Source: Octopus sinensis (Eukaryota). Taken from it: DNA of 64,000 nucleotides. Below, piece by piece: positions 989-56,603 of the stretch. Numbering within the stretch: position 1 is the first letter of the stretch; each line of letters begins with the position of its first letter. Location: positions 5,084,001 through 5,148,000 of the forward strand of contig NC_043026.1 of assembly GCF_006345805.1 (NCBI RefSeq), read 5' to 3'. A program made the translations under genes and the position numbers. The notes beneath the pieces are model-generated. The model was given only the letters and a program-made list of their open reading frames with translations. It did no database searches and was not told the origin of the DNA.

Positions 989-1273
989 TTACTTACTTGT
1001 GTCGAAAGTTTTGGCTTCCTCGTTCTTTGATGTGTCTTCGAGGAGGTTTTTATATAGTTTTTGGGACAGATATTTCTGGAAACCCCCTACAGCATTTGGG
1101 AAGAGGGCTTTGAGTTTGTGGTGTTGTGTTTGTGTGATGTGTAGTATTTTTATGTGTTTGGGTGGTGTAGTGCGTGGATGATTGCTATTTTTAAAGTCAT
1201 CTTCACAAATGTTTGTGTAGCCTGTGATGTACTCCATTAGTTTGGAGTCTTTGGTGTCTATCGCTGATAGCAT
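989..1273 (-). CDS. Short inter-ORF reading frame of the LINE (94 aa), possibly a frameshifted ORF1 C-terminus
   Basis: Overlaps the ORF1 stop by 16 nt in the -1 frame and ends 50 nt before the ORF2 ATG; non-repetitive composition. Confidence 0.4.
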   Translation of the reverse strand: MLSAIDTKDSKLMEYITGYTNICEDDFKNSNHPRTTPPKHIKILHITQTQHHKLKALFPNAVGGFQKYLSQKLYKNLLEDTSKNEEAKTFDTSK

Positions 1274-2707
1274 TGTGTGTGTTGCTTTGTGGTGTTGGTG
1301 CTTGTTTGGTTGTATATGGAGTTTTCAGGGTTCAGGTATCTCCCTGCTTTGGTTGCGATTTCTTGTTTGGTTTTTCTTGATCTTTTTCTTTTACCCCCTG
1401 TGGCTATTTGCCATTCTGTCGAACTTTCATCGTTAGATGAAAAGTCTGACGAATCAGCAGGGGGTAACGGTAAAGCGTCTGGGTCTGTTTGTGCGGTTGT
1501 AGATATTGTTGTGTTGCGCGGGGAGGGTGTTGCTGGGGGGTTTGTTGTGGTTATTGTCTCTCCTACATCCTTGGTGCTTGTCTTCTTCGTTGTTATTCTT
1601 GGTGTTGGAATTGGTTTATTTGTTGTTGGTGGTGATGATTCTGTTCTTGGCGCTGGTGTTAGTGTTGTTTGGTTGGGTTGGCTTGTTCTTTGTTGTTTTT
1701 CATGCATTTCTGTATACAGCTTCTTGACTAGCTGTCTATATTGTGGTGTGGGCAATAATGCTGGCTTTTGTGATTTTTCCTGTGGCTGTTGTTGTTGTTG
1801 TAATTTAGCGGCAGATTTGCACTCCTTTTTGAGGTGTGCCTCACTGCCACATGTATAGCATCGTGGTCTTCTGCCCTCGACTACTACGTATAACTTGCGG
1901 CCATCCTCAAGATGTACGTGGGTGGGAATTTTATTGATGTCCTCTTGACTTATGTGGAAGAGGAACTCCATTCTCTTTCCCAGCCAGTCCTTGTTTTTCG
2001 AAACACCGATATCTAGGATGTTTAAGTCCTCCATTTCGGATGTTAAGGCGGATGTTATCCACAGTGTTGTAGTTACTTGGGGTACACCACTGATAATGAC
2101 CTTCGTCACCTTCTGGCCAAGGTAACTCGATGTCATCATTAGTTCATCAGAATGAAGGGTTATCGTTGAGAATTTCTTCGTCAACTCTTCATTCTGAAAA
2201 ACCACCTGTACGTGGGCGAACTTGTTTGCCCAAGTCACATAATCCTTGTATCCCCAGATGGGGCGTAAGCACTTTTCTACTTTGTCTGTGCTTGCCTTTT
2301 CTGGACTTTTAGTTTTTTTATTTGTGATTTTATATACAATTGTCTTTTTTTTCTCCTCATTCAGTATGTCTTGAGGTATGTGTAAGAGTATTTTGCCGTT
2401 TTCATTTGTAATAAGGTTTCTGCAATCTTTTATTTGTTGTGTAGTAAACGAAACTTTTGTTATTTTTTCTTTTATCGCCTCGGCGAAGTTTGTTGTTGTT
2501 TTGTTATTGTTGTTACTGCCGGTGGTGTTGGTGTTGATGGCAGGGGTGTGGGTTGTAGGTTTGTGGTTGCTGATTATGCAACTAGCAAGGGGTGGAAAAT
2601 TGTCTGCGTAATTTAGTCCTGCATTAGCGCAAATTTCGGCATTTCGTTTGGTTGTCGTTGTTATTTTTTCACTTGTTGGTGATGGAGTGAGCAGTGGTTG
2701 AAGGGAA

Positions 2708-2739
<32 letters not shown>

Positions 2740-3231
2740 GTTGTTATTGTCGTTCTTGGAGACGGCGGTGGTGTTAGTGGTATTAGTAGCATTGACGGCA
2801 CGGTCTTTGGTGGCGGTGATGGTGATGTTGGTATTGTTATTGGTGGCGATGTCTTTGGCAGGGATAGCAGTTTTAGTAGCAGATGCTGCCATGGTGTTGT
2901 TGTCGGTGTTGGTGGTGGACTCACTGGTGGTGTTGAGGGTGCTTGGCCTTGCGACCTTTGTTTTGTATTTGTTGCTGATGTCGATGCTGATGGTGGTGGT
3001 GGTGAAAGCGGTGGTGGTAACAGTAGTATTCGCTTTGTTGCTCTTGTTAGTGGTGGTAGTGGTGACAGTGTTGTTACTACAAGTGGTTGCAGCGTTCATT
3101 GCAAATTCATTGATGATTTCACCTTGCGAGGATAAATTCTTTTTTTCTCCTAGCGTTTCCAGACTAGGAGAAAGCTGGTCGATAGAGGAACGCGACCATC
3201 GTTCTAAAATACAATTTCTTGACATTTTCAA
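1258..3231 (-). CDS. Tx1/L1-clade LINE ORF1 (gag-like, CCHC zinc knuckle)
   Basis: 657-aa ORF with an RRM-like segment (TKVIISGVP) and VVVEGRRPRCYTCGSEAHLKKEC (CX2CX4HX4C), directly upstream of the APE ORF; Thr/Asn low-complexity N-terminus. Confidence 0.88.
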
Positions 3232-3432
3232 AAATGTCGAAAAGGAAATTATACAAATGAAATGGGGTTGAAACTGCCCCTAGGGGCGAATTCCTCCCTT
3301 GGAAAAGCACTGAAACGAAAGTTGGGTGCCTTACACAACTTATTTACAAAAATGTACACAAAAATTGGCCTATAAATAGTCAAAATAAATTATTACCTTC
3401 GGAGCTGAACTGACATCACGTCCGTCAATAAA

Positions 3433-4519: not shown

Positions 4520-5694
4520 CTGTGGCATAACTACAGATGAACACCCCATCGACTTTGTTTCCTCATAACTTCCAGGAAAATGGATATTTTAAATGAAACT
4601 TCCACTTTCATTTTCTAACAGAAAAGGATGCTCTCAAAAGAAATCCTCTTTTACAAAGCTCTTATTTAAATCCCCGTGGATAAATCCCAGCAAGAATCTT
4701 CTGAGGCTCTCCAATATTTTACAATTATATAAAGAGAAAGAATCGGGGGCCAGGAAGTGGGGCTAAAAATAATCAGAGATTTTTAAAAGATTCTGTTTAT
4801 TTTTTTATAGCATAAATGCGTTTCTGAGGGGAAAATATTGAAAAGCATAAAAAAAAACACTGAATGAGGAAAAAAAAAGACAAGGAGGGTGGTGTGCTAG
4901 AAACAACAGCCAAATCTCCCTTAAATCACACACTATTTCCCTCGACCCCTTACAAAACATTTTGCCCAAAAATTTCTTTTAAATTGTAATCTGCATCGTT
5001 TGAAATTATTTCTACCAAATTTCATTCAAAAATACGCATTTTTCTACAAAAATACCTTTATACACATGTATATACCTACATATACACACATGTCTTTGCT
5101 ATGTTTTTTAAACACATAAAACTCATAGATGCATAATTTTATAATATTTTACACTTAAACCGCCGCTGGACAATATTTTCAGAGTTGCTTCTTAAAGTGT
5201 CCTTTACTTGTTTGATGATAAACGATACAAATTTCAGAGTATTTGGCTGTTATTTCTAGCATAATGTTAGGCCATCTATAGGACAATATTTGACATGGAT
5301 GCTTTGAAAATTGTCCTTCGATTTTTATTTGTGATGAAACAAAAATGTGAAGGTTTAGGTGGCTCTTTCTAGCATGAAATGAGACCATATACAGGCCAAT
5401 TTTATTTATGAATGCTTCTTACAGTGTTCTTCAAAATTTATATGAAAAATAAAGTGGTTTCTATTTCTAGCATGAAAAATGACCAGCTATGAGAAAGCTT
5501 TTAACGAATGCTTCTTAAAGTGTCCTCTTTTTTTATGAACCCCCGACAGCAACAACAACAACAACAACCCGACGAGGACGAAAGGCAATGTTTGTGCGTG
5601 TGTGCAGTTGGAATGTCACTGCAACAACAACAACAATCTATTCTTATTAAATGTTAAAAACTGTCAGATGCAGACTGCACACACGCACACACAA

Positions 5695-5820
5695 CGCTGA
5701 TGACGACGATGGTGATGATGGTGATGATGACGATGATGATGACGATGATGATGATGATGGTGATGGTGATGATGATAATGATGGTGGTGGTGATGGTGGT
5801 GGCGGCGGCGGTGGTCGTCT
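5695..5820. repeat. (GAT)n/(GGT)n compound microsatellite (also at 49617-49740)
   Basis: Visible tandem triplets; these produce the spurious poly-Asp and poly-His ORFs. Confidence 0.9.
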
Positions 5821-5921
5821 GCTGTTTTTGTTGTTGTTGGTCGTCTGCCTTTTAATGGAGAATCAATGATTATGAAAGTCTCTGCTTTCGGACCAGACAT
5901 TCCTATACATACATGCATGCG

Positions 5922-5955
<34 letters not shown>

Positions 5956-6097
5956 AACATACATACTTATAGCCTTATTTCTATACATACATTCCTAAAT
6001 ATGTGTATATATATATAAACACATGTATATATACTGTATATAAATACACACACACACACACACAAAGAGAGTGTGTTGAGGAATGTTACAACGATAA

Positions 6098-6154
6098 GTG
6101 TTAGTGTGTAGAATGCAATGTATGCGATGCAGGTTCGATTCCCGGGCGAAGCCA
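6098..6154 (+). pseudogene. Degenerate tRNA(Gly)-like sequence (tRNA pseudogene or SINE head), antisense in the 3' flank of the propeller gene; second copy ~50996-51053
   Basis: tagtgtgtagaatgcaa...gcga..caggttcgattcccgggcgaagcca resembles the D-loop (A box) and T-loop (B box, GGTTCGATTCC) of tRNA-Gly, but the anticodon arm is missing. Confidence 0.4.
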
Positions 6155-6207
6155 TTTACAACAAAAAGAAGAAGAAGAAGATTGAAGTTTAATATTTCTG
6201 GAAATAT

Positions 6208-9015
6208 TTATTTGTCAAAATAAAAGAAAGCAAAAGATTGACGTCCAGGAATAATTCCAAAAACCATCAAAGAATTGTCTGAAACATCCAAACCAAGAAC
6301 TTCAAAGACTTCATTATCCTCCCCTCTGAGGAGTAAATATTTAGGATTATCTTTTAATCCCAGGATTTCATCATCTTCAGATGTTTCCTCTTCAATATAT
6401 TGAGGTATTTCGTAAATATTGTTTATTAAATCTGTTATATAAACACATTCACCAATTATGGTCAGACGAGGTCTTGGAATATAATCTTCCGGATAATAAG
6501 TCGTTTCTCCTTCTATTCTTATCTTCCTCACCAAAGACTTTTCCCTGAACCATTCCACAAAACAAAAAACTCCCCACCATCCAGACCCCTTCTCCTCCAT
6601 CTCTCTCCTCAAAACAACAACATCACCAAAAGATGTGACTCCCACATCTTCCACCCCTTCATCTCCCTCAAACTTTCCCTTTCTCCTCATCTTCCCACGA
6701 CACACTTCATCTTTACATTTCCCATCTTTGATATCAACCACATCCACATAATAAGGGTCAAAGATGTAGGAGTTATTGCAATAATAGTAATCCTTGTTGT
6801 TCTTCCATATTCTTTGGTATTTCTTGTGTCTCTCTTCTTGAGTTATGTCTCTAATATAATGACCACCACACACGAGTTGATTGTCGTTGTATTTATAAAT
6901 CCTGTTGTAGTATTTCTCAGTTCTGATGGTTTTTAAACGACGGAGATCCCTGTTGAAGACCCTCATTTCTCTCCCAAAGGCGACAATGAAACATTCCTCT
7001 ATCCACCGACATATGTCCAGTGCTGGTCGTTGTTGTTGTTCATGTTGAAGTATGTCCACTGTTGTTGTTGTTGTTCTGATTAATGTGACACTTTCTCGAA
7101 ATATCAACACACTCACATTCTCATCTAACTTAATTAGTTTACTGTTCCGGTCCCTAATGTCCCTCATATCATAATCAACAGGTTCCTCGAATGCAGGAAT
7201 GGAAAAAGGGACCATTGCTGTCCTATATGGAAGTCTCCTCACTGATATTTCATCAATTCCTGAATTATTAATCTCTGCTATGTAATTACCACATCTCACC
7301 TTTAATCTACCTTTACCAATTATTTCACCTGATTTACCTCTTCTTCTTCCTCCTCCATCTCCATCTCCTCCTCTGTATTCCAATTTATTAATTAATTCAT
7401 TACTGAATATTTCCTTGTTCGTTTCAGATGTAATGGAAGGGAAACGAAGACCAGAATCAAGATTTAATAACGACACAGATTCCAGAATGTTCACTTGGTC
7501 CCCATCAATCTTTATGCAATGACATTCAATCAATTCATTATGTACACACCAGTAAATACCCGCCACTTTTCTCCATATTACACCATAAGGGATGAGACTC
7601 GACCAAACTTGAGATGTCTGCAAATCTTCTCCATTCAGGTGAAATATTTCTTTCCTTTTAGGAACCGTGGCCATTATGTGTGATTCTTGTGTAAAACACA
7701 CACCACCGACTAAACTTGCAACATTTCTGTGACATAGCAACTGGCCGTCTTCATCGAATATTTTAACATTTCCATTATTGGCTTTTTCACACACAACTGT
7801 CTTTCCTTCCTCAGAGACATCAAAATCTTTTACTTGAACAGGACTTTCGTCTGTTTGTAAACGAGCAACCGGGAAGCTGTCTCGATTCACCATAAACAAC
7901 CCTTCAACATACAATTCATTCCATCTCATTCCCCTCCTGGGCCTTCCAACAAACCTTGGTCCTTTACAGTCTATACTGGAGAAATATACTTCATCTTTAT
8001 AAATTCTTTTATTTAAAAATATTCTCTTGTATTCCCCATTCTGAGTCAAACACAAAATATTTCCATATTCAGATGAACCTAAATATTTCTCCCACTGACC
8101 GTAAATGTACAAAAAACTGTCATCAATTGTCATCCTGTCATCACCAAAATACTCCATGTAGTGTCTGACTGAATGTAAATATTGACCACCACTGTTGAAG
8201 AAAATGATGAATCTGCAATTTAAGACAATGATGACATCTTCATCAGTAACTTTAATATCCAGGATTATATCAAAATAATTTCCATCTTCGTTTCTCTTTA
8301 TTAATGGTTCAGGTATGTCTATTTTTTTTATTTCCTTCACACTCGAATGTATTTCATCAATATCAACAAAATGCAAATGTCTTACATCTCTCGATTCACT
8401 AAAAACCAGTTGATTGTTTGATAAAGAAGCCACACATTCATAATAATTTCTCGTTTGGTAAATTACCAACGACAATGGAAACTCCACTTTTAATGTCAAC
8501 AGTTGGTGTTTATCATCATCAGAATGATCCCTATTCGTAATGACCAATGTGTTTGACTGCCATCGACACATTTTAATATTAATATAAACATTCACTTTGA
8601 TTGAATCCATAAGGTGACCATCCAATGTGAATATCTTAATGTTTCCATTCTCCCTGTCCCATCCTGCAATCATATTATTTTCAGTAAGAACCAAACGATT
8701 AATCTCCACTGGTTCTTTGTCTCCCAAATGTTTAGGGGGAGGAATACGTCTGGCTTTATCAGAAACTGTCAGGTCCTGTAGATATAAAGTGGAAGACAAC
8801 ATTTCACTGAGAGAAATGTGTCTGGAAAATACATCCACCAGGTCGATATAATAATTAAGTTGATTATTAGTAACGAGATCATTAACCAACAAATTCTGAT
8901 CGTTTATGGCAAACATACGGCTTCTGTCTATCAGATAAACAGACTTTTGGTCAATAGATCCACCTTGGAGACTGAGGGGACGTTTCACTTGGGACATTAA
9001 AACACTGGGGACCAT
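6208..9015 (-). CDS. Tandem NHL-like beta-propeller protein, C-terminal half (end of propeller 3 plus propellers 4-6)
   Basis: 935-aa ORF of beta-strand-rich repeats with motifs such as WDRENGNIKIFTLDG, CEKANNGNVKIFDEDG, MCRWQSNTLVIT and LDICRWIEECFIVAF. The reading frame is open upstream to 9096. Confidence 0.85.
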   Translation of the reverse strand: MVPSVLMSQVKRPLSLQGGSIDQKSVYLIDRSRMFAINDQNLLVNDLVTNNQLNYYIDLVDVFSRHISLSEMLSSTLYLQDLTVSDKARRIPPPKHLGDKEPVEINRLVLTENNMIAGWDRENGNIKIFTLDGHLMDSIKVNVYINIKMCRWQSNTLVITNRDHSDDDKHQLLTLKVEFPLSLVIYQTRNYYECVASLSNNQLVFSESRDVRHLHFVDIDEIHSSVKEIKKIDIPEPLIKRNEDGNYFDIILDIKVTDEDVIIVLNCRFIIFFNSGGQYLHSVRHYMEYFGDDRMTIDDSFLYIYGQWEKYLGSSEYGNILCLTQNGEYKRIFLNKRIYKDEVYFSSIDCKGPRFVGRPRRGMRWNELYVEGLFMVNRDSFPVARLQTDESPVQVKDFDVSEEGKTVVCEKANNGNVKIFDEDGQLLCHRNVASLVGGVCFTQESHIMATVPKRKEIFHLNGEDLQTSQVWSSLIPYGVIWRKVAGIYWCVHNELIECHCIKIDGDQVNILESVSLLNLDSGLRFPSITSETNKEIFSNELINKLEYRGGDGDGGGRRRGKSGEIIGKGRLKVRCGNYIAEINNSGIDEISVRRLPYRTAMVPFSIPAFEEPVDYDMRDIRDRNSKLIKLDENVSVLIFRESVTLIRTTTTTVDILQHEQQQRPALDICRWIEECFIVAFGREMRVFNRDLRRLKTIRTEKYYNRIYKYNDNQLVCGGHYIRDITQEERHKKYQRIWKNNKDYYYCNNSYIFDPYYVDVVDIKDGKCKDEVCRGKMRRKGKFEGDEGVEDVGVTSFGDVVVLRREMEEKGSGWWGVFCFVEWFREKSLVRKIRIEGETTYYPEDYIPRPRLTIIGECVYITDLINNIYEIPQYIEEETSEDDEILGLKDNPKYLLLRGEDNEVFEVLGLDVSDNSLMVFGIIPGRQSFAFFYFDK

Positions 9016-9024
9016 CTGACGACC

Positions 9025-9180
9025 GCCATGACCACCACCACTAATGTGCTTGAAGAAAGCTTCTATTTCGGACTCTGAATCACTGGAACCATACCATCAC
9101 TACTACTAATACTACCATCACCACTACTAATACTACCATCACCACTGCTAATACTACCATCACTGCCATGACCACCACCA
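9025..9180. repeat. Gly/Ser linker: 21-bp tandem repeat x3 within a 140-bp segment bounded by 16-bp direct repeats GCCATGACCACCACCA
   Basis: Direct repeats at 9025-9040 and 9165-9180; the segment is absent in copy 2 (53915-53940). Confidence 0.9.
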
Positions 9181-11657
9181 CCTATTCTAGTGTTGTACTG
9201 AAAAGCTTTTCCCCTAGTAACAATTAATAGCTTTTCTGTTTTCTTGTCTATTGATAATGATTTCACAAACACAGGGATATTAATTGTCTTAATTACTTCG
9301 ACTTGATTATAATAATTGATGGCTAAAATGTCTAAATGTGATGGTTTATCACAATAACAAACAATTTCACATTCACCCATCTTACACACCCGTACATAAG
9401 GCTGCCTTAATGATACACTTCTCACTCTCTTTGATAGGTTTCCGATGACCCTTAATTGTTTCTGTAGGGGTAACGTGACCCCTATATGATTAGAATCCCA
9501 TCGACATATATGTGTGGCTATAGACGGCAGAGATAATCTGGACACAATGTCTCCTTCCTCAGAAATATACAACAAGCAATCATGCTTGATGTCAGACACC
9601 ACCAACTGTCCATTGGACAGATTACATATTTCGCCAATGACAAGTTTTTGGTCATTCTCCTTTTCTTTGAGTCGTAGATTTAGATTTCTGATATAAGGAT
9701 TTTTAATGGGTAAACAACAGCCAGACGACCGGTCTTGATACATGTAAAGAAGAACCCTGTTGAGTTGAGTGTCCGGGACATAAAGAGTTCCTTGGAAAAC
9801 AGCAATGTGAGGGTGAACAGGGAAAGGCAGTTCCCACTGCCATTTCATTTGTCCATATAGATCGTAACATTTGAGAATAGAGTGTCTCCTGAAGAGGACA
9901 TAGAAATAAACATTATCAGAGTAGATGTGATGAGGGTGGCCATAGAATGGAAGGTATTTTTGAAAAAGTTCTTCACCACATGTGGAATAAAATACCATTT
10001 TATTTTCGTTTCCATCTACGACTACAAAATTAATTGGAGTTGCAGCAATGCTGACATTATGATGTCCAAGAGAAATTCTTTCTGCAATGTCAACTTTATC
10101 TTCGTTGATCAATAGGATATGGACCTCGCTTTTGTTTTCAGTGGTGGTCACAGCCAGACACTTATTTGATACAATATGACATATTTTCATGTAACCAGTT
10201 TGCACCTTTATTAAAGGGCCTTTTCTTAGTTCAGGACAGGTGATATACTGAAATCCTTTCATTTCACGATAAAATACCAGGAATCTGTTTGCATTTATTC
10301 TACAACAGAAAGAAGGAAGCTCAAGGAAAACTAAATTATTTTGGCTAATTATTTCCCCGTTATCAGTGAATAATTTAGCTTTCTTGTTTTTGTAAATTAT
10401 TAATATAGAAGATGTAGACATAGGTAGAATATTTGTAATGTTGTAGCAATCCTCAATATGAATATAGTCTTTTAAACTGGGGGTATGTAGCTGGTGGTTG
10501 TATGACAGTTTGGGCCAAAAGTCTTTATTCATTTGAATACCATGTGGTTTGCCGCAATAATCTGTTACCAAAATGGTATCTTTACCAACAGAAATAGAGC
10601 GGCATTTCCTGCCAACGTCCCTCCTTGTTACACCACCTTTAGCTGAAATTCTATAAATTATTTGTCCCTGGAGGACATAGAAATAATTTTGGTACAGAGA
10701 GATTTTACTTGGGAGGTGCAGAGAATGGGTCTCTACCTCCCATAACTGTTGGCCATCCAGTTTGTAACAGATTACTCTTTTAATACTGGGAAATGATATT
10801 ACAAGTATATTCTGGACCCCTACAGCAATATCTGTAGGGGTTTCTTTGGTAATAAATTGATAGTTTATGGTATTATCCTCCCAATCAAATTGGTAAACTA
10901 TCTTACCAAACATTTCTACACCTATAAGTTTAGAATCTTCCAAGTAACTCACCATATGTAACCCCAACTGTATCCTTTTGATCTTGAAGGTTTTGGGGCT
11001 GATAATAAGAATCATTTCTTGGAATGGGAGGGTTGCCAGAACCATGTCTTCACTGATTCTTGTGAAACTGGTCACAGAAGATTGACAATGGACATCAATT
11101 CTGTCACTGTCTCTTGTGACTAAACTTATTGTCTTACAATGGTGGGAATATGTCATCACTCCCTCCTCTAAGATGACAATATTGGATATTATTGTCCTTT
11201 CTTCAAATTCTTCTCCAGATTCCTCAATGTTTGCTTCTCTAGTCACAACTGGCTGAAGAGGCCGAAATTTATTTTTGGTTATTTTTGGTGTCTGAATGGT
11301 CTTCCATCTGTATGGGTTACAGGTGACATAAATGTCAAAGAGTCTTTGTTGAAACCATTCAAGGTTCTGCTCAATAGAAATATTCTGTTCTTTAGTATAT
11401 TTCAGCAAAATTCCAAGTCTCTCTTTGACCTTTTCTAAAATACAATTGGCACTTAACCCCAGACTTTCATAATGTTTGATCTCCTTAACTATATGCTCCA
11501 TAAACATCATGCTGCAATCATATTGAAGACAAATCCTCTGTATTTTAGCAACTATTTGTTTTTCAGTTCCTTTTGTGCTTTCTTTGTCTCCAGATATGGC
11601 CTTCACTGCTGATTCTCTCTCTGAACTAACCCTAGTATTTTCAGTCTGGTCTTCCAT
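9063..11657 (-). CDS. Tandem NHL-like beta-propeller protein, N-terminal half (helical domain, propellers 1-2, start of 3)
   Basis: 864-aa ORF with motifs such as SNGQLVVSDIKHDCLLYISEEG and HICRWDSNHIGVTLPLQKQL, as in NHL-like propellers of molluscan TRIM-like proteins. A splice acceptor (ttttccttatatttctttacag) lies 7 nt before the ATG. Confidence 0.85.
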   Translation of the reverse strand: MEDQTENTRVSSERESAVKAISGDKESTKGTEKQIVAKIQRICLQYDCSMMFMEHIVKEIKHYESLGLSANCILEKVKERLGILLKYTKEQNISIEQNLEWFQQRLFDIYVTCNPYRWKTIQTPKITKNKFRPLQPVVTREANIEESGEEFEERTIISNIVILEEGVMTYSHHCKTISLVTRDSDRIDVHCQSSVTSFTRISEDMVLATLPFQEMILIISPKTFKIKRIQLGLHMVSYLEDSKLIGVEMFGKIVYQFDWEDNTINYQFITKETPTDIAVGVQNILVISFPSIKRVICYKLDGQQLWEVETHSLHLPSKISLYQNYFYVLQGQIIYRISAKGGVTRRDVGRKCRSISVGKDTILVTDYCGKPHGIQMNKDFWPKLSYNHQLHTPSLKDYIHIEDCYNITNILPMSTSSILIIYKNKKAKLFTDNGEIISQNNLVFLELPSFCCRINANRFLVFYREMKGFQYITCPELRKGPLIKVQTGYMKICHIVSNKCLAVTTTENKSEVHILLINEDKVDIAERISLGHHNVSIAATPINFVVVDGNENKMVFYSTCGEELFQKYLPFYGHPHHIYSDNVYFYVLFRRHSILKCYDLYGQMKWQWELPFPVHPHIAVFQGTLYVPDTQLNRVLLYMYQDRSSGCCLPIKNPYIRNLNLRLKEKENDQKLVIGEICNLSNGQLVVSDIKHDCLLYISEEGDIVSRLSLPSIATHICRWDSNHIGVTLPLQKQLRVIGNLSKRVRSVSLRQPYVRVCKMGECEIVCYCDKPSHLDILAINYYNQVEVIKTINIPVFVKSLSIDKKTEKLLIVTRGKAFQYNTRIGGGGHGSDGSISSGDGSISSGDGSISSSDGMVPVIQSPK

Positions 11658-12265
11658 AATGAATCTGTAAAGAAATATAAGGAAAACATTTAGCTTTGTG
11701 AAAATATTAAAGTTTCAGGGAGATGATGTTTGCTTCATCATTTGAAAAACACCAACAAAACATTTATGTATTTCTGTCAGTGAATTAATCTTGTCTAATT
11801 AATATTTAAACAACTTATTACAATCTATTCTAAGATGTATTAATAAGTTTCATTAATTACATGGAGTCTAAATATTAGAAATAATTATTTTCACTGGAAA
11901 TGATATTTGCTCTCAACATCACCAAGAAATAGTCATGTGTGGCTTAGATTTATTTAACGATAATTAGTCAAAGAGATTCCCCTGCTCCAAAAGCACTCAA
12001 TAACGAGACACTCTAAGCTGTAGAGAAAATTAACTTTAATTGGTGTACATGCTATATTATGTCCCAACACACAGCAATCATGTTCAAACTTCGTTAATAT
12101 GGAACAATTAGCAAAACATAGACTTTATTATGTTTCATAGACATTTGTCAGATACAAGACAGACTGAACATTTTGCTAGTTAGATGGAATATAAGTATTA
12201 CTAATGATTATATGTACTGAAAATGATGGGACAGTCATGGCTGGCTTGGTTTCCATCATATTTAC

Positions 12266-12463
12266 CTGGAATAACAGATAGCAATAAATCTGGAGATGAA
12301 ACTGTTCTTAACCTGACAAATGCTGTAAATCTCTCGACATTTCAATATAATCCACACAATTATCATACACAACATTGATTAACTCGGAAAGCTTATCCAA
12401 AGATGGGCTTTCATATAATCACACTGATAGACAGCATGTTGAGAGGATCGTTATTATTTGTTG
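12266..12463 (-). other. Candidate exon 2 of the propeller gene (copy 2: 57301-57495)
   Basis: Acceptor tctttattaatctcaatcag and donor CAG|GTAAAT are conserved in both copies. The ATG at 12375 gives 36 codons + 2 nt, phase-compatible with the large exon. Confidence 0.5.
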
Positions 12464-13538
12464 CTGATTGAGATTAATAAAGATTGGTTAATGAATTAGC
12501 CCAATTAATGAAAGGTAGGTTCATCTTAATTATCTTTAATATAAGGGACAATGTTTGGGTAGCAATGGGAAAGATGTGTTTGTATGAAAAAGGGGTTTGG
12601 CAGGTGAAGTGTGTTTTGTTTTGTGTTAGGTGAGGAGTTATATCTTGGTGTAGTTTATTATGAAGTATTGGGGGTTTAATGAGGTGGATTAGGAAATATT
12701 GGTGGGGGTGTTTAATGACATTCTGGTGACCCATCATCATCAAAATGATCCTCCACCCCTCCTTGGTCTATGAAATAATGACTGTTACTCTATTGACCCC
12801 AGGAGGAATGAAAAATAAAAGAGACCTTCTTCAGGATACACATACCTGTATATGTATATATGATAGAATGAATGTGTATAATATATACACAAGGATGCAC
12901 ATATGTATATTTATACATCCATACGTCTGTATGTATGTATGATGATCATCATTTTACCCCCACTTTCCATGCTGGAATGGGTTGGATGGTTCAAAGAATA
13001 TCTTGCCTGAAGTTACATTTTCTGATTATCTTTTTACAGCTGGATGCTCTTCCTGACACCAACCACTGCACAATGTGCACTGGGTGCATCTTATGGCACC
13101 ATCGCTAGAGACAATCGCCATGTCCTTGACAAAACTAAAGGTTCCCCTCAATCTCTGGGTGTGACATATACCTTGGGATGGGTGAGAGATCTAGGGTAAT
13201 AAATATATGAAAAGGAGTGGCTGAGTGTTGAGGAGAGACTCAGGTGGGTCCAGTAACATCCCTAGTTTCATTGGAAGAATGGTAAAGAGAAGAGATTTAC
13301 TGCCAATCTTTGTTACAGCAGTAAGATAGTGGAGTAAAAAGAAGAAGAGAGAGTGATTGAGAGATGAAAGATAGAGGTGGGGGTGATAGGGGCGTGACAG
13401 TAGGGACTCAAGGTCCAAGAGTTGACACTCATCAAAGTGGTGTTTGGAGGTCTGGGAATATACCTCCAAAGAACCAGTTTGATAAATGCTAATAAACGAA
13501 ACTTTCGGATTTTGGGTCACTTTGTTACTTCTGCTAAA

Positions 13539-13574
<36 letters not shown>

Positions 13575-13577
13575 CAA

Positions 13578-14965
13578 AGGGCCTTAGAGTCAACCTAGCT
13601 AAAACCAAAGTCCTAATAAGTGGGAAGGCAAGCAAACCACAAATCCCTTCAGGTAGATGGCCCTGCCCGATCTGTAGTAGAGGTTTAGGTAGAAACTCTA
13701 AGATGTACTTGGTGTAAGCTATGGACACATAAGAGGTGCAGCAATATCAAAGGAAGGCTAACTGGCAAGATAGCTTTTGTATGTGGCAGATGCTCGGGTG
13801 CAATAAACACTGAAAATACGCAGAGAACAACTTCCGCCACATTCCAGGAAGAAAAACTAGAAGTAGTTGATAGCTTCCATTACCTAGGTGACCAAGTCAG
13901 TAGTGGGGGAGGGTGCGCTGAAAGTGTAGCTGCTAGAATAAGAATAGCTTGGGCAAAGTTCAGAGAGCTCTTACCTTTGCTGGTGACAAAGGGCCTCTCG
14001 CTCAGAGTAAAAGGTAGACTGTATGACGTATGTGCACGAAATGCCATGCTACATGGCAGTGAAACATGGGCTGTGACTGCTGAGGACATGCGTAAGCTCG
14101 CAAGGAATGAAACCAGTATGCTCCGATGGATGTGTAATGTCAGTGTTCATAAACGACAGAGTGTAAGCACCTTGAGAGAAATATTGGTCCTAAGAAGCAG
14201 CAGATGGGGTGTCCAAAAGACGACTGCACTGGTATGGTCATGTCGCAAGAATGGATGAGGATAGCTGTGTGAAAAAGTGCCACACCCTAGCGTTTGAGGG
14301 AACCTGTGGAAGAGGTAGGCCCAGGAAAACCTGGGATGAAGTGGTGAAGCATGACCTTCGAACTTTAGGCCTCACCAAGGAAATGATTAGTGACCGACAC
14401 TTTTGGAAATATGCCGTGCGTGAGAAGACTCAGCAAGCCACATGAGAACATAACCTCGTGGTCTATGCCAGGGGCGTAACCAGCCCACTTATGCGTCCCT
14501 TTTCCTTCTTTGGACACTAAAACTCTGCTTGCGAAGACCTGTTGATGCAAGTGAAATCAAAATCAAATCCGATGACTGGCATCTGTGCTAGCGGGGAGCA
14601 AAGAGCACCATACGAGTGTGATCGTTGACAGAGTGGCTAACCGGCTTCCATGCCAGTGGCACATAAAAGTCGCCATTCGAGCTTGATAGTTACCAGCATT
14701 GCCTTACTGGCACCTGTGCCGGTGGCATGTGTAAAAGATTTGAACAAGGTAGTTACCAGTATCGCGTGACTGGCCCTGTGCCGGTGACACGTAAAAGCAC
14801 CCACTACACTCTCGGAGTGGTTGGCGTTAGGAAGGGCATCCAGCTGTAGAAACTCTGCCAGATCAAGATTGGAGCCTGGTGCCACCATCTGGTTCGCCAG
14901 CCTTCAGTCAAATTGTCCAACCATGTTAGCATGGAAAGTGGATGTTAAACGATGATGATGATGAT
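13578..14965 (+). mobile_element. RTE-clade LINE, 5'-truncated, with 3' UTR and (GAT)n tail
   Basis: GLRVNLAKTKVL..WPCPIC; YLGDQV..RIRIAWAKFRELLPLL..HGSETW..LRWMC..RRLHWYGHVARM..GRGRPRKTW; frameshifted. Confidence 0.9.
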
Positions 14966-15920
14966 ATATACATACATACAGATATACATAAATGGACATA
15001 TGTAAATATATGAATATACCTTCACATACCCGTGTATAAATGTTTGTGTCTATGTATGTTTTTAGATATGAATCAATGAACAACAAAAGAGCCAGAGTTA
15101 CGTAGACACGTTCATTAGCTTCCAGCTGTTTCTGCTACAGGAAGCAGTGAACTCGAGCTGAGTGTGTGTGCGCGTAGGTGTCTATGCATTTGTTTATGTT
15201 TACAATCTCTTTTAAGTTGCTCCAAGCAGAAACATCTGTCAACCATTCACCCCCACCTTGGAAGACATGGGAAATAAGAACTTTTGTTCTTGCAAAATGG
15301 TTTTGGGTGAGCAATAAGAAGGCTGTCTGTCCGTAAAACAAGGCTACAATAATATATTCACCTAACCCATGCAAGCATACAAAATCAGATGTGCAATCAA
15401 ACATAAGTAAACCCATGTTTATTCATTCATATACTCTTATGCATGCATAAACACACACACACACGTGTGTGTGTGCATCTGGTATTAAGAAGATCATCCA
15501 GCTGTAGAAATCTTGCCAAATCTTTCATTGGAGCTCAGCAATGTCCTCTGGTTCACTGCTTCCTCGTCAACTGTCCTACCCATGCCAGTTAGGGAAAATG
15601 GATGTCAAAACCTTTATAATACATCAGATGATGTATTTTCTTTTCTGTATTTTCCCTCTCATAATTTTGTTTTTTTTCTTGCCAGGTTCTTGTGAGTGCC
15701 ACTCAGTCAAGTCTATGACTACACTCGATGAGGGTCACTAATCTTCAGCTGGGTTCAAGCAAGAGAATATTTCCCCAAGTTCTTCCAACATGAACAGCAC
15801 AATGGTTGGATATGTTTTCTGGTGAAACACTGCAAACAAACGACTCTGTTTATGTGACGTGACATTTGTTTATAATTCGCAGCAGATATCAAGACAAGGA
15901 GACATGAGCAGACATATGCA

Positions 15921-15985
<65 letters not shown>

Positions 15986-16229
15986 CTTACATGCATACAC
16001 ATACATGCATACATGAATATACACACACATGCATATACCATAGACTTTATCAGTTCCATGTACGAAACTCATTCACAAGGCTTGAGTCAACCTGTAACAT
16101 TAGAAGAAGTTAATTCTTTAAGGTGCTGCAAAGTGGGACTGAACCTGAGACCACAAGGTTGTGAAGTGAGTTTCTTAACCATACAGCCATGCCCCCAACT
16201 TTTTTTGGTAATATTTTGAAGATAATAAT

Positions 16230-17230
16230 AATCCTTTCTACTATAGGCATAAGACCTGAAATTTTGGGTGTGGGCACTAATTGATTACATCACCCCCCAG
16301 CCCCTAACTGGTTCTTATTTTATCAATCCCAAAAGGACGGGGGGCAAAATCAACCTTGGTGGAATTTGAACTCGAAATGTAAACTTGGAAGAAATGATGC
16401 AAAATATTTTGTCTGGCATTTTGTAACAATTCTGCTTGTTCATCACATTAATAATAATAAGAAGAAGAATATCAATAACTATAACAATAACAACATCAAT
16501 AATAATAATATTAGCAGCAGCAGCAAAAACAACAACAACAACAGCAATGATTTTTTTTTTTTAATATAATAAAAATGATTTCAAGTTTTGGCACAAGGCC
16601 AGCAAGTTCAAGGAAGGGTCCAGTCTATTATACTGATCCCAATACTCAACTAGTACTTAATTTATCGATCCCATAAGGATGAGAGGCTAAGTCAACCTTG
16701 GTGGAATTTGAACTCAGAATGTAAAGATGGACAAAATGCCGCTCAACATTTTGCTTTGCATCCTCACAATTCTGCCAGCTCATCACAGTAATAATAATAA
16801 TAATGATAATGATAATAATAATAATGATAATAATAATAATAATACTTTCTTACAATAGGCACAAGGCCTGAAATTTGGGGTGAGGGGACTAGTAAAGTAC
16901 ATTGCCTCCATTGCGTAGCTGGAACTTATTGAATCGACCCCAAAAGGATGAAAGGCAAAGTTGATCTTGGTGGAATTTGAACTCAGAATGTAGTGGCAGA
17001 TGAGTCGTAATAATAATAATAATGGCTTCAAATTTTAACAGAAGGCCAGCTTGTTCTGGAGAGCAGTTAAATTGATTGCATCGACCCCAGAATACAAAAG
17101 GTACTTATTTTATTGACCCCGAAAGGATAAAGGTTGATGTCGGCAAAATTTGAACTCAGAACGTAAAGGCAAACAAATAGCTGCCTAGCATTTTGCCCAG
17201 CATGCTAACGATTCTGCCAGCTCACCACCC
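16230..17230 (-). mobile_element. Cluster of four tandem tRNA-derived SINE copies separated by (AAT)n tails
   Basis: Repeated units (reverse complement of gagctggcagaatcgttagc..ttctgagttcaaattccaccaagg..ggccttgtgcc) at ~16230, 16575, 16850 and 17025. Confidence 0.8.
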
Positions 17231-17247
17231 AAATAATAGTAATAGTA

Positions 17248-17278
<31 letters not shown>

Positions 17279-26865: not shown

Positions 26866-27003
26866 TGTGTGTGTGTGTGTGTATGTAAATATATATACAT
26901 ACATACACACACACACACACACATATTATATATATTATGTAATATATATATATATATTATGTATATTATATGTATATATATATATATATATATAATGTAT
27001 GTA

Positions 27004-27040
<37 letters not shown>

Positions 27041-27056
27041 TGTAAACACATGTACA

Positions 27057-27091
<35 letters not shown>

Positions 27092-49835: not shown

Positions 49836-49874
<39 letters not shown>

Positions 49875-50848: not shown

Positions 50849-51117
50849 CACACACAGAAACATACATACTTATAGCCTTATTTCTATATATACGTTCCTA
50901 AATATCTGTGTATATATATATAACACATGTATATATACTGTATAAATATACACTCACACACAAAGAGAGAGTGTTGAGAAATGTTACAACAATAAGTGTT
51001 AGTGTGTAGAATGCAATGTATGCGATGCAGGTTCGATTCACGGGCGAAGCCATTTACATCAACAACAATAAGAAGAAGAAGAAGAAAGATTTGAAGTTTA
51101 ATATTTCTGGAAATATT

Positions 51118-54100
51118 TATTTGTCAAAATAAAAGAAAGCAAAAGATTGACGTCCAGGAATAATTCCAAAACCATCAAAGAATTGTCTGAAACATCTAAA
51201 CAAAGAACTTCAAAGACTTCATTATCATACCCTCTGAGGAGTAAATATTTTGAATTATCTTTTAATTCCAGGATTTCATCATCTTCAGATGTTTCTCTTC
51301 AATATGTTGAGGTATTTCGTAAATATTGTTTATGAAATCTGTTATATAAACACATTCACCAATTATGGTCAGACGAGCTCTTGGAATATAGTATTCTGGA
51401 TCATAAAAACATTCTTTCTTCTATTCTTATCCTCCTCACCAAAGACTTTTCCTGAACCATTCCACAAAAAAAAAAAACCTCCCACCCTCCAAACCTCCTC
51501 TTCTTTGTCTCCCTCCTCAAAACAACAACATCACCAAAGATGTGACTCCCACACCATCCACCCCTTCATCTTCCTCCAACCTTCTCCATCTCCTCACCTT
51601 CCCACGACACACTCCATCTTTACATTTCCCATCATTGATATCAACCACATCCACATAATAAGGGTCAAAGATGTCGGGGTCATCGCAATATAGTAATACT
51701 TGTTGTTTCTCCATATTCTTTTGTATTTCTTGTCTCCCTTTTCTTGAGTTATGTCTCTAATATAATGACCACCACACACGAGTTGATTGTCGTTGTATTT
51801 ATAATCCTGTTGTAGTATTTCTCAGTTTTTATGGTTTTTAAACCACAGAGATCCCTGTCAAAGACCCTCATTTCTCTCCCAAAGGCGACAATGAAACATT
51901 CCTCTGTCCACCGACATATGTCCAGTGCTGGTCGTTGTTGTTGTTTCATGTTGAAGTATGTCCACTGTTGTTGTTGTTGTTGTTCTGATTAAGTGACCAC
52001 TTTCTCGAAACATCAACACACTCACATTCTCATCTAACTTAATTAGTTTACTGTTCCGGTCCTTAATGTCCCTCAAATCGTAATCAACAGGTTCCTCGTA
52101 TGCAGGAATGGAAAAAGGACCATTGCTGTCCTATAGAAGTCCGCCGCACTGATAGTTCATCAATTCCTGAATTATTAATCTCTGCTATGTAATTACCACA
52201 TCTCACCTTTAATCTACCTTACTATTATTTCACCTGATTTACCTCTTCTTCCTCCTCCATCTCCATCTCCTCCTCTGTATTCCAAGTTGTTAATTAATTC
52301 ATTACTGAATATTTCCTTGTTCGTTTCAGATGTAATGGAAGGAAACGAAGACCAGAATCAAGATTTAATAACGACCAGATTCCAGAATGTTCACTTGTCC
52401 CCCATCAATCTTTATGCAATGACATTCAATCAATTCATTATGTACACACCAGTAATACCCGCCACTTTTCTCCCTATTACACCATACGGGATGAGACTCG
52501 ACAAACTTGAGATGTCTGCAAATCTCCCCATTCAGTTGAAATATTTCTTTCCTTTTAGGACCGTGGCCATTATGTGTGATTCTTGTGTAAAACACACACC
52601 ACCAACTAAACTTGCAAACTTTCTGTGACGTAGCAACTGGCCGTCGTCATCGAATATTTAACATTTCCATTATTGGCTTTTTCACACACAACTGTCTTTC
52701 CTTCCTCAGAGACATCAAAATCTTTTACTTGAACAGGACATTCGTCTGTTGTAAACGAGCAACCGGGAAACTGTCTCGATTCACCATAAACAACCCTTCA
52801 ACATACAATTCATTACTTTCTTTTCCCTCCTGGGGCTTCCAACGAACCTTGGTCCTTTACAGTCTATACTGGAGAAATATACTTTATCTTTATAAATTCT
52901 TTCATTTAAAAATATTCTCTTGTATTCCCCATTCTGGGTCAACACACAAATGTTTCGATATCCAGATGACTAAAACATTTCTCCCACTCACCATAAATGT
53001 ACAAAAAACTGTCATCAATTGTCATCCTGTCATCACTACCAAGATAATCCATGTAGTGTCTGACTGAATGTAAATATTGACCATTACTGTTGAAGAAATG
53101 ATGACTCTTTCGTTGAAGACAATGATGACATCTTCATCAGTAACTTAATATCCCGGATTCTATCAGAATAATTTCCATCTTCTTTTCTCCTTATTAATGG
53201 TTCAGGTATGTCTATTTTTTTTTATTTCCTCCACCTCACTGAATGTATTTCATCAAGATCAACAAATGCAAATGTCTTACATCTCTTTCGATTCACTAAA
53301 AACCAGTTGATTGTTTGATAAAGAAGCCACACATTCATAATTATTTCTTGTTTGATAAATTACCAACGACAATGGAAATTCCACTTTTAATGTCAACAGT
53401 TGGAGTTTATCATCATCTTCAGCATCCCCAGTCATAATGACCAGTGTGTTTGACTGCCATTGACACATTTAATATAATCATAACATTCACTTTGATTGAA
53501 TCCAAAAGCTGACCATCCAATGTGAATATCTTAATGTTTCCATTCTCCCTGTCACATACTGCAATCAGATTATTTTCAGTAAGAACCAAAGATATAATCC
53601 TCGCTGGTCTTTTGTCTCCCAAATTTTAGGGAGAGGAATATGTCTGGCTTTATCAGAAACTGTCATGTCCTGTAGATATAAAGTGGAAGACAACATTTCA
53701 CTGAGAGAAATTTTCTGGAAAATACATCCACCAGGTCGATATAATAATTTAGTTGATTATTAGTACGAGATCATTAACCAACAAATTCTGATCGTTTATG
53801 GCAAACATACGCGGCTCTGTCTATCAGATAAACAGACGTTTGGTCAATAGATCCACCTTGGAGACTGAGGGGGACGTTTTCACTTGGGACATTAAAACAC
53901 TGGGGACCATCTGACGACCGCCCTGACCACCACCACCTATTGTAGTGTTGTACTGAAAAGCTTTTCCCCTAGTAACAATAATAGCTTTTCTGTTTCTTGT
54001 CTATTGATAATGATTCACAACACACAGGGATTAATTGTCTTAATTACTTTCAACTTGATTATAATAATTGATAGCTAAAATGTCTAAATGTGATGGTTTA

Positions 54101-56603
54101 TCACAATAACAAACAATTTCACCTTCACCCATCTTACACACCCGTACATAAGGCTTCCTTAATGATACACTTCTCACTGTCTTTGATAGTTTCCGATCAC
54201 CCTTAATTGTTTCTGTAGGGGTAATGTGACCCCTATATGATTAGAATCCCATCGACATATATCTGTGGCTGTAGACGGCAGAGATAATCTAGACACAATG
54301 TCTCCTTCCTCAGAAATGTACAACAAGCAATCATGGTTGATGTCAGACACCACCAACTGTCCATTGGACAGATTACATATTTCGCCAATGACAAGTTTTT
54401 GGTCATTCTCCTTTCTTTGAGTCGTAGATTTAGATTTCTGATGTAAGGATTTTTAATGGGTAAAAGACAGCCAGACGACCGGTCATGATTCTTATAAGAA
54501 GAACCCTGTTGAGTTGAGTGTCCGGGACATAAAGAGTTCCTTGGAAAACAGCAATGTGAGGGTGAACAGGGAAAGGCAGTTCCCACTGCCATTTCATTTG
54601 TCCATATAGCTCGTAACATCTGAGAATAGAGTATCTCCTGAAGAGGACATAGAAATAAACATTATCAGAGTAGATGTGATGAGGGTGGCCATAGAATGGA
54701 AGGTATTTTTGAAAAGTTTTTCTCCACATGTGGAATAAAATACCATTTTATTTTCGTTTTCATCTACGACTACAAAATTAATTGGAGTTGCAGCAATGCT
54801 GACATTATGATGTCCCAGAAAAATTCGTTCAGCAATGTCAACTTTATCTTCGTTGATCAATAAGATATGGACCCCTCGCTTTTGTTTTCAGTGGTGGTCA
54901 CAGCCAAACTTATTTGATACAATATGACATATTTTCATGTAACCAGTTTTGCACCTTTATTAAAGGGCCTTTTCTTAGTTCAGGACAGGTGATATACTGA
55001 AACCCTTTCATTTCAGGATAAATACCAGGAATCTGTTTGCGTTTATTCTACAACAGAAAGAAGGAAGCTCAAGGAAAACTGAATTATTTTGGTTAATTAT
55101 TTCCCCGTTATCAGTGAATAATTTAGCTTTCTTGTTTTTGTAAATTATTAATATAGAAGATGTAGACATAGGTAAATATTTGTAATGTTGTAGCAATCCT
55201 CAATATAAATATAGTTGTTCAATGTGGGGTCCATAGCTTGGGGTTTATGACTGCCTGGGCCAAAAGCTTCATTTGTTCCAATGATATGAAGGACATCAAA
55301 ATAATCGGTTACAAAAATTTTTCTTTGCCAACAGAAATATGGCGGCATTTCATGCCAATTTCTCTTGTTGTCACAGCACCTGTACCTGATATCCGATAAA
55401 TAATATGTCCCTGAAGGACATAAAAATGGTTTTGGTACACAGAGATGTGGCTTGGAATGTCCAGGGAATTGGTATCCACCTCAAATAACTGCTGGCCATC
55501 CACATTGTAACAGGTAACCCTGTTAATATTGGAAAAGGATACTAAGAGTTTATTTTGTGCTCCTACAGCAATATCTGAAGGGGTTTCTTTGGTTATGAAT
55601 TCGTATTTTATTCTATTCTCTTCCCAGTCAATGACGTATATGGTCCGACCAAACATTTCTACACCTATAAGCGTAGAATGTTCCAAATAAGAAACCAAGA
55701 TTAATCCTAGCTGAATTCTTTTGATTCGCAAACTTAAAGGGTTGATAATAAGAATCATCTTTCGAAATGGGATGGTGGCGAGGACTGTGTCTTTACTGAT
55801 TCTGGTAAAATCAGTGACGGAGATGAGCAATAAACTTCATTTCTGTTGCCGTCTCTTGTTATACAACATATTGACATATAATGGCGGGAATATGTTACAA
55901 TACCCCCTTGTATGACGACAATATTGGATATTGTTTGCTTAAGTCTTCACCAGATTCCTCAATCTCTACTTCTCTGGTCACAACTGGCCGAAGAGGACGA
56001 AATTTTGTGATTACTTTTGGTGGTTCTATGGTCTTGTGGTTGTATGGGTTACAGGTGACATAAATGTCAAAGAGTCTTTGTTGAAACCAATCAAGATTTT
56101 GGTGAACAAAATCATTATTTTGTTCTGCAAATTCCAGAAATCTTGGCATTTTACGTTTGATATTACGTAGATTCGAGATCCATTTAAACCCAGAGAGTCC
56201 ATGTGATTACATTTATCCTTTACATAATCTATAAACGTATTGATGTGGTCTGTTTTGATTAGTGTTCGGTAACATGTCACAATATGAAGGAAACTTGGTA
56301 ACATGGACTTTTCCTGTTCTTTAGATTTCTTTCTGTCTTTTCTTTCCTGTTCTTCTGTTTTCTTTGTGTTTGTGTGTATGTAATATTTGGGTAAGAATTG
56401 GTGTAGTTCCTTATAAATTGCTGTTGCATCACAGACTGTGGTGGGAATGAGAGCCAACATTTTGTTTTCTTCATTAATCTTCTCCTTTTATGAATATAGA
56501 ATTATTATCTTTTTCTGTTAAATATATTCTTTTCTGTGGATTTTGTTTTCTTCCTTTGGAATACAATTTATCTCTTCAAAATTCACTAATTTTTACATGA
56601 AAG
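51118..56603 (-). pseudogene. Propeller gene copy 2, large exon fragmented by many 1-bp indels (pseudogene or assembly error)
   Basis: Collinear homology with 6208-11664. ORF fragments match the copy 1 peptides; the junction AFQYNTTIGGGGQGGRQMVPSVL is in frame; acceptor ttttcattttatttcag at 56604. Confidence 0.8.

Follow-up and report, generated by a model that had tools for sequence, protein, structure and literature searches.

A single reading frame interrupted by one base

We analyzed a 64,000-nucleotide (nt) stretch of the Octopus sinensis genome, here called the window (NCBI RefSeq assembly GCF_006345805.1, contig NC_043026.1, positions 5,084,001 to 5,148,000). An earlier note, made from the sequence alone, had recognized a giant single-exon gene in it, whose two open reading frames (ORFs) join into a protein of ~1816 amino acids (aa) with six tandem NHL-like beta-propellers. 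Both ORFs were present on the minus strand. The open frames cover 9063..11714 (first ATG at 11657) and 6208..9096 and overlap by 34 nt in different frames. Their fusion, joined between ...SSSDGMV and SSDSESE..., was exactly 1816 aa long. The coding region is laid out as follows.

6208..11657, minus strand: whole disrupted coding region; ATG at 11657, stop at 6208-6210; 1816 aa once the frameshift is bridged
9066..11657, minus strand: ORF A, 864 aa; N-terminal helical region, both of the predicted propellers 1 and 2, and the first four blades of propeller 3
6211..9096, minus strand: ORF B, 962 aa; remainder of propeller 3, followed by a conserved linker and units 4-6
9087..9088, minus strand: frameshift site; TT in the window, against TTT (GGTATGGTTTCCAG) in the two intact paralogues closest to it
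9092..9163, minus strand: 21-bp tandem repeat, 3.4 copies, encoding GDGSISS repeats; lies in a Gly/Ser-rich loop that interrupts propeller 3

At the frameshift, the window reads GGTATGG-TTCCAG where the intact paralogues L002/L011 and L006/L012 read GGTATGGTTTCCAG. One T missing from a short T-run is the sole separator of ORFs A and B. Because both intact paralogues have TTT, we concluded that ORFs A and B are parts of one gene and not independent genes; the two ORFs and their fusion stand as first described, but they result from a 1-nt deletion in a single ORF and are not simply its two halves. For annotation, they are best treated as one gene with a single-base frameshift. The gene was also rightly described as single-exon: the intact O. 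vulgaris homologue P0003 is annotated as a single 5406-nt exon, and intact paralogues are open for 1800-1880 aa.

Two other causes of the frame change were considered and ruled out. A short intron (GT...AG around 9204-9041) is not needed by the intact paralogues, which read through this region with one extra T. The 140-nt segment between two GGTGGTGGTCATGGC copies, which the window's other copy of the gene (copy 2) lacks, might have been a frame-breaking insertion; in the closest intact paralogues, however, it is 141 nt long and in frame.

The frameshift falls within the third beta domain, between blades 4 and 5, and adjoins the 21-bp tandem repeat, so that the third domain would be incomplete in the product of either ORF by itself. 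The 3' end of ORF A is an out-of-frame run into the stop at 9063-9065. The Gly/Ser-rich loop segment of propeller 3 is missing from other subfamilies, and no exact match to ORF A was found in other assemblies.

Since the focal copy is intact save for one T beside a tandem repeat, there are two ways to read the locus: as a very young pseudogene with a recent lesion, or as a gene with an artefactual indel introduced during assembly. The chance that the frameshift is real and the locus a dead pseudogene, with only other family members functional, falls a little short of even. The assembled sequence does read TT against TTT in the intact paralogues, copy 2 is heavily degraded, and several other copies contain stops. 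Yet the frameshift is the sole lesion in 5.4 kb, and it sits in a homopolymer beside a tandem repeat, a setting typical of long-read consensus errors. The focal lineage has 73 private substitutions and 0 stops, versus ~3.7 expected if it were neutral (Poisson P ~0.02), and no other private indel was counted. Copy 2, with 14-26 indels per kb in coding sequence (CDS) and flanks alike, suggests that local assembly quality may be poor.

Six repeated units and their predicted fold

We next considered the internal repeats of the fused protein. The earlier note had listed three ordered motifs for each of six units, and 18 of its 18 motif strings were found in the concatenated ORFs. By simple concatenation, they lie at aa 155/197/235, 405/450/489 and 672/716/754 in units 1-3, and at aa 993/1039/1083, 1283/1329/1368 and 1503/1558/1594 in units 4-6. 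The spacing is regular across all six units, at 42-55 aa and then 36-44 aa. A BLASTP self-comparison returned no internal repeat match at E<10; the units are too diverged for BLASTP and profile methods were therefore needed. With unit profiles built from 32-39 family members each, profile-profile comparison aligned the units in register: unit 3 with unit 6 at 95.5% probability (E 1.6e-8), unit 3 with unit 4 at 78%, unit 4 with unit 5 at 76%, and unit 4 with unit 6 at 79%. The comparison was weaker for units 1 and 2 (10-24% probability). The same motifs lined up in a MAFFT alignment of the six units (first ~135 residues) from seven diverse family members. The shared pattern is a first blade of the form nG-x-hvv-D...-h-x-hF-x-x-dG-x-h, followed by CRW...TLP and then by Y-x-x-I...lvC. 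By these sequence comparisons, the six-unit internal duplication is genuine, and the proposal that the protein was built by duplication within one exon is borne out by the homology of its beta-rich units.

We then examined the predicted fold. An AlphaFold2 model of ORF A was built with a 39-sequence family alignment (mean predicted local distance difference test score, pLDDT, 69.9; beta domains ~80-85). The units across the frameshift were modelled through the homologue P0046 (fused aa 680-1816, 61% identity; mean pLDDT 66.6). The beta domains scored mostly 75-90 in both models, unit 5 excepted. The domains map to the window as follows.

11211..11657, minus strand: N-terminal region, aa 1-149; predicted helices at 29-65, 70-90 and 99-112; pLDDT 50-70
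10512..11195, minus strand: unit 1 (predicted propeller 1), aa 155-382; 24 predicted strands; pLDDT ~80
9735..10472, minus strand: unit 2 (predicted propeller 2), aa 396-641; 23 predicted strands; pLDDT ~85
9183..9650, minus strand: unit 3 (predicted propeller 3), first part, aa 670-825; 16 strands, or four blades; the most conserved stretch of the family
8905..9021, minus strand: unit 3 after the loop and frameshift, ORF B aa 26-64; four further strands in the model of homologue P0046
8758..8895, minus strand: linker, ORF B aa 68-113; conserved in sequence, modelled at low confidence; possibly a sixth blade, possibly an interdomain element
7900..8751, minus strand: unit 4 (predicted propeller 4), ORF B aa 116-399; modelled in the homologue with 24 strands at pLDDT 80-90
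7204..7833, minus strand: unit 5, ORF B aa 422-631; ~16 strands at low confidence; Gly/Arg-rich disordered loop at 7303-7461
6214..7140, minus strand: unit 6, ORF B aa 653-961; ~23 strands, long hairpins among them; highest pLDDT 93; variable middle

Units 1 to 6 were thus modelled with 24, 23, 16+4, 24, ~16 and ~23 strands. By strand count alone, at least four units (1, 2, 4 and 6) are predicted to be six-bladed, four-stranded beta-propellers. The claim of six propellers holds for units 1, 2, 4 and approximately 6, but not as it stands for units 3 and 5, which are smaller or of low confidence. Foldseek searches of the PDB with both models retrieved multi-propeller proteins (IFT-A subunits, Utp21, LRP2/LRP4/ROS1 and DDB1) at E 1e-20 to 1e-15. 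The template modelling (TM) scores for both models were low (0.05-0.28) because query and targets are multi-domain, and a whole-model search of this kind cannot tell propeller classes apart. Against a viral library, Foldseek found generic propellers only. Overall, the models support a multi-propeller architecture. No signal peptide or transmembrane segment was detected in the protein (maximum 19-aa hydropathy 1.31). Intact members would therefore be predicted, from sequence and models, to encode a soluble protein of ~1800 aa with a variable helical N-terminus and six homologous beta-rich units.

Whether the units belong to the NHL family is less clear. The Pfam NHL model (PF01436) matched neither of the two ORFs and none of five diverse relatives at E<=1, and a full Pfam scan of the same sequences gave nothing significant of any kind. 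Genome-wide, PF01436 found 45 repeats at ~15 loci, 0 of them on scaffold C30, which holds most copies of the family. A full-family profile reached TRIM71 among PDB sequences at E 0.39 through one 21-aa blade, and single-unit profiles compared with a small octopus NHL profile by hhalign gave at most 29% probability, over one blade only. A profile merging all six units was more sensitive: it matched the solved NHL domain of TRIM2 at E 1.1e-7 (one 34-aa stretch, 35 bits), and those of Brat (3.4e-5), TRIM3 (3e-4), TRIM71 (0.011) and Thin (0.13). On four genuine O. sinensis NHL domains it scored 20-32 bits, versus at most 7.5 bits for 1000 shuffles. Its top match, however, was the repetitive WD40 protein 2ymu, as the sum of 13 weak repeats of 1.5-6 bits each. 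By these profiles, the blades bear a genuine but faint NHL-type signature; "NHL-like", the term of the earlier note, is fair as a description on the strength of the merged-unit matches, but family membership is not demonstrated, with PF01436 failing and hhalign staying at or below 29%.

The protein was also said to lack a B-box, and indeed no RING, B-box or coiled-coil was found by Pfam scan, N-terminal composition or N-terminal profile. Within residues 1-150 there are just 4 Cys and 2 His, and the N-terminal region (aa 1-149), the most variable part of the family, is without a zinc-finger pattern. Compared with an octopus RING-B-box-coiled-coil-NHL protein, the N-terminal profile gave 0.3% probability and no similarity to the TRIM coiled-coil. 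WD40 Pfam repeats had no match in the window ORFs or five relatives, and the strand counts point to six blades; nor did YWTD (Ldl_recept_b) Pfam repeats match, the likeness to LRP2 and LRP4 being at the level of the fold only.

These data bear on a possible descent from TRIM-NHL proteins, in which the units would be true NHL propellers, multiplied after loss of RING, B-box and coiled-coil, and would bind RNA like those of Brat and LIN-41. Such a descent is compatible with a six-unit octopod family of putative scaffolds, the reading that we favor below, and we regard it as unlikely, though worth weighing. The merged-unit matches to TRIM2, Brat, TRIM3 and TRIM71 (E 1e-7 to 1e-2) and the scores on octopus NHL domains, well above shuffles, speak for it, as does the agreement in blade count and size (six blades of ~40 aa). 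First blades also resemble the NHL core, for example IAGWDRENGNIKIFTLDG versus IIVADKDNHRIQIFTFDG of TRIM71; the best NHL-like first blade of all is that of unit 4 (IAGWDRENGNIKIFTLDGHLM). Set against these are the failure of PF01436 on every member tested, the single-blade hhalign matches, the still higher score of the merged profile on 2ymu, the WD40 and YWTD multi-propellers at the top of the Foldseek matches, and the 0.3% probability for the N-terminal region.

Comparison with known multi-propeller proteins places the octopod protein apart from each group. Like the TRIM-NHL proteins (TRIM2, TRIM3, TRIM71/LIN-41, Brat and Thin/TRIM32), it appears to have ~40-aa four-stranded blades, six to a propeller, and to be intracellular, and its unit first blades carry an NHL-type core (hydrophobic strand - D/N-x-x-N - hydrophobic I/V-x-I/V-F - x-x-D/E-G - x - L/F). 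Unlike them, it is without RING, B-box, coiled-coil and filamin domains, is not matched by Pfam NHL, has six tandem units instead of one, and is confined to octopods at no fewer than 85 loci. LRP2/megalin, LRP4 and ROS1 likewise have several six-bladed (YWTD) propellers per chain and were matched by both halves (Foldseek E 1e-18 to 1e-17); they are, however, secreted or membrane receptors whose propellers are separated by EGF or LDL-A modules, whereas the octopod protein has no signal peptide, transmembrane segment, EGF module or YWTD Pfam match, and identity is 8-11%. DDB1/CPSF160/SF3B3 and the tandem-WD40 proteins (Utp21, IFT-A subunits and WDR90) are intracellular multi-propeller scaffolds among the top Foldseek matches, and offer a functional analogy for a multivalent binding platform. 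Those proteins are seven-bladed, with two to four propellers, and are ancient, single-copy and highly conserved; the octopod protein is six-bladed by prediction, has six units and no WD40 Pfam match, and belongs to a young amplified family.

Relatives and growth of the family

We searched for relatives of the gene in other species. All 51 of 51 matches in a word-index database came from O. vulgaris (dozens of them on one 29.19-Mb chromosome), O. bimaculoides and O. sinensis, and are labelled "uncharacterized" or "hypothetical predicted" proteins. Precomputed Pfam entries among these 51 were zinc-finger or DUF4371 on P0004 and P0010 only, which are over-long and probably fused models, plus a PF23381 entry on P0036 that our own Pfam scan did not reproduce. 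A phmmer search of ORF B against 1.84 billion cluster representatives returned 26 clusters, and those looked up were from Octopus species and Argonauta hians (41% identity, 1913 aa). By word-index search and among the phmmer clusters looked up, no relative was found outside octopods. A profile search with a diverse alignment recovered only the founder P0061 and one Logan contig, and did not widen the phyletic range. The suggestion that the gene is lineage-specific is in line with these results. It had also been said to match the architecture of no named gene; the relatives that share it are all uncharacterized, with no named gene among them, and we found no description of a six-propeller octopod family in the searchable literature. 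What is already known of these proteins is their presence in public databases as hypothetical proteins.

Two relatives appear to mark old lineages. P0061 (33% identity) and P0054 (45%) belong to 90%-identity clusters in which each of the three Octopus species is represented by one protein, and they lie on large chromosomes. In a FastTree phylogeny, the old 1:1 orthologue lineages were basal to a crown clade of O. vulgaris and O. sinensis sequences only, and this crown clade is a recent burst specific to these two species. The focal copy lies in the crown clade as sister to L011. The O. sinensis orthologue of P0061 (L031/L032, G000:C2:146466265-146467781) was found as two overlapping pieces, with 2 TAA codons in one match; it also looks frameshifted, which hints at local assembly indel errors.

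The earlier note had proposed a count of paralogues, and we performed it by six-frame search of the 2.72-Gb O. sinensis assembly. ORF A gave 52 scored loci among 314 candidates, and a 506-aa piece of a distant family member gave 85 scored loci among 306 candidates, so that family size is given as a lower bound of at least 85 loci (~300 candidates). Most copies lie along scaffold C30 (15.1 Mb), on which the window itself is located, from 1.5 to 15.1 Mb, with more than 40 scored copies there; fewer are on C28, C25, C27, C10, C2 and C1, and some on unplaced contigs. Dozens of paralogues have uninterrupted intronless frames of 1800-1880 aa, while several other copies contain stops. One small chromosome thus appears to be largely an array of six-propeller genes, and the O. 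vulgaris relatives lie on one 29.19-Mb chromosome (OX597841.1). These paralogues, like the frameshift and the degraded second copy in the window, had gone unnoticed in the earlier note.

How the family has grown can be followed in the regions around the copies, two of which are placed here.

51117..56126, minus strand: copy 2 of the gene in the window, inside a duplicated block at 48982-58428
12186..13399, minus strand: 5' flank block of the focal gene; 94-97% identity to O. sinensis paralogues, higher than in the CDS

Copy 2 is 92.8% identical to the focal gene in aligned bases, with 96 gaps over ~5 kb, 89 of which shift the frame and most of which are 1-nt deletions. The block that contains it and its flanks is 87-94% identical at the DNA level. 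Because indel density is similar in CDS and flanks, copy 2 is either an old pseudogene or a poorly polished part of the assembly. Collinear homology runs well beyond the ORF, from 5066-22415 against 48982-60452 within the window, with a similar pattern against the O. vulgaris locus and blocks of at least 17 kb. Because it extends so far past the ORF, we reasoned that the family grows by segmental or tandem duplication and not by transposition. The 5' flank block is missing at the O. vulgaris P0003 locus, whose upstream region matches window 16-22 kb instead, and the first ~70 codons (11657-11442) are likewise not alignable at the P0003 gene. The block may be a promoter and 5' untranslated region or a shared insertion, and the pattern suggests that the 5' end and promoter region have been swapped in a subfamily-specific way.

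A selfish or transposable element (TE)-borne ORF, whose copy number came from mobilisation, would also account for a large family. Its number of copies, some on many unplaced contigs, its intronless genes, its TE-rich surroundings (LINE endonuclease, CCHC and reverse transcriptase fragments lie in the window) and an overall high ratio of nonsynonymous to synonymous substitution (dN/dS) would all fit. Nevertheless, we consider this origin very improbable. Six members scanned had no Pfam domain, catalytic or other; in particular, transposase, reverse transcriptase, integrase and helicase domains were absent from the members scanned with Pfam. The copies have long collinear flanks in common, as expected of segmental or tandem duplication, and are concentrated on one scaffold instead of dispersed. 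Old single-copy orthologues on other chromosomes have been kept between Octopus species, and propellers 1 and 3 are under purifying selection (see below). No sharp common end of the copies was seen in the stretches examined, in a search for termini that was not exhaustive.

Selection, possible roles and neighboring elements

To follow constraint along the protein, we compared paralogue CDSs. Pairwise dN/dS among eight close paralogues was 0.45-1.07, high overall, and differed between regions (bootstrap 95% confidence intervals in brackets).

Propeller 1: dN/dS 0.26 (0.15-0.47)
Propeller 3, first part (3a): dN/dS 0.42 (0.23-0.77)
Propeller 5: dN/dS 0.54 (0.31-1.00)
Propeller 2: dN/dS 0.56 (0.31-1.11)
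N-terminus: dN/dS 0.69 (0.48-1.01)
Propeller 4: dN/dS 1.11 (0.84-1.51)
Propeller 6: dN/dS 1.33 (0.92-2.12)

The excess over 1 in units 4 and 6 was not significant. Variation among 38 relatives was greatest in the N-terminus and in parts of units 4 and 6 and lowest in units 3 and 5, and strands were better conserved than loops. Judged from these substitution patterns, the family is now or was recently under protein-level selection. The data also dispose of the idea that the ORFs are chance or low-complexity artefacts and no real gene, in whose favor only the lack of Pfam matches could be cited: the same 1800-aa frame is common to dozens of paralogues and orthologues, its structure is predicted confidently, and constraint varies by domain. 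We regard that idea as refuted.

Taken together, our analyses favor, with a probability of about 0.7, the focal locus being a member of a large, octopod-restricted, tandemly amplified and intronless family of ~1800-aa six-unit proteins that are putative scaffolds. Several observations weigh against this reading. PF01436 matches no sequence tested, and the similarity to NHL domains is limited to single blades. Units 3 (~20 strands, split by a loop) and 5 (~16 strands, low pLDDT) are not supported by the models as closed six-bladed propellers. The selection analysis rests on 4-8 paralogue CDSs, with the ratios of units 4 and 6 on 4-7; overall dN/dS is high, and values of ~1 in units 4 and 6 fit relaxed constraint equally with diversifying selection. 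Finally, the intact paralogue L011 (G000:C30:4405832-4411267, 1811 aa) is without a near-identical O. sinensis database protein, its best matches being O. sinensis at 77% and O. vulgaris at up to 89%; it may be, therefore, that many copies lack annotation or expression or have been classed as pseudogenes.

The six-unit protein may act as an intracellular multivalent binding scaffold. The more constrained propellers 1, 2, 3 and 5 might keep a common structural or partner-binding role, and the fast-evolving propellers 4 and 6, with the N-terminus, might vary the target recognised. As speculation, such targets could include RNA, viral or transposon proteins, or partners in genetic conflict. Conserved modules combined with fast-evolving ones are typical of amplified recognition or conflict gene families. 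Fish finTRIMs, molluscan TRIM expansions and NLR arrays share with the octopod family its amplification in tandem, a birth-and-death evolution that leaves pseudogenes, and high dN/dS restricted to certain domains; unlike them, the octopod protein has no detected signalling or effector domain (RING, NACHT, TIR or death fold). A role of the family in recognition or conflict is a tentative proposal that we hold to be possible but unlikely. Still less probable is its fullest form, in which ~100-300 intronless six-propeller genes make up a diversified intracellular recognition repertoire against viruses, transposons or other genetic-conflict targets; if true, octopods would have invented a class of invertebrate recognition proteins that had not been described before.

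Octopus genomes are noted for lineage-specific expansions of protocadherins, C2H2 zinc fingers and G protein-coupled receptors. The six-propeller family appears to be an expansion of like scale, with at least 85 loci of ~1800-aa ORFs and one 15-Mb scaffold as its main site. Six tandem NHL-like propellers, as predicted, with no other recognisable domain form an architecture without a named counterpart. If the copies are expressed, the family would offer a tractable case of new giant proteins arising by intragenic duplication and then amplification, and a candidate cephalopod recognition or conflict system.

Several other elements lie in the window.

3-959 and 1258-3279, minus strand: LINE-like (long interspersed nuclear element) retrotransposon; one ORF with an Exo_endo_phos domain (APE-type endonuclease, E 1e-15) runs off the window, and upstream of it a low-complexity ORF of 673 aa matches a CCHC zinc knuckle at E 0.0035, under the Pfam cut-off
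5664-5966: (TGA/TGG)n microsatellite just 3' of the gene; its opposite strand holds a 100-aa His/Arg-rich ORF that is almost certainly non-coding
26541-27143, minus strand: 200-aa ORF in microsatellite-like sequence; weak RVT_1 fragment at E 0.008, under the cut-off
34356-35180 and 36790-37612: 827-bp inverted repeat pair, 99% identical and ~1.6 kb apart, which could be a foldback or terminal inverted repeat element or a recent inverted duplication
49919-50149 and 50574-50805: inverted pair of 233-bp repeats at 97.9% identity, a short way downstream of the degraded copy 2

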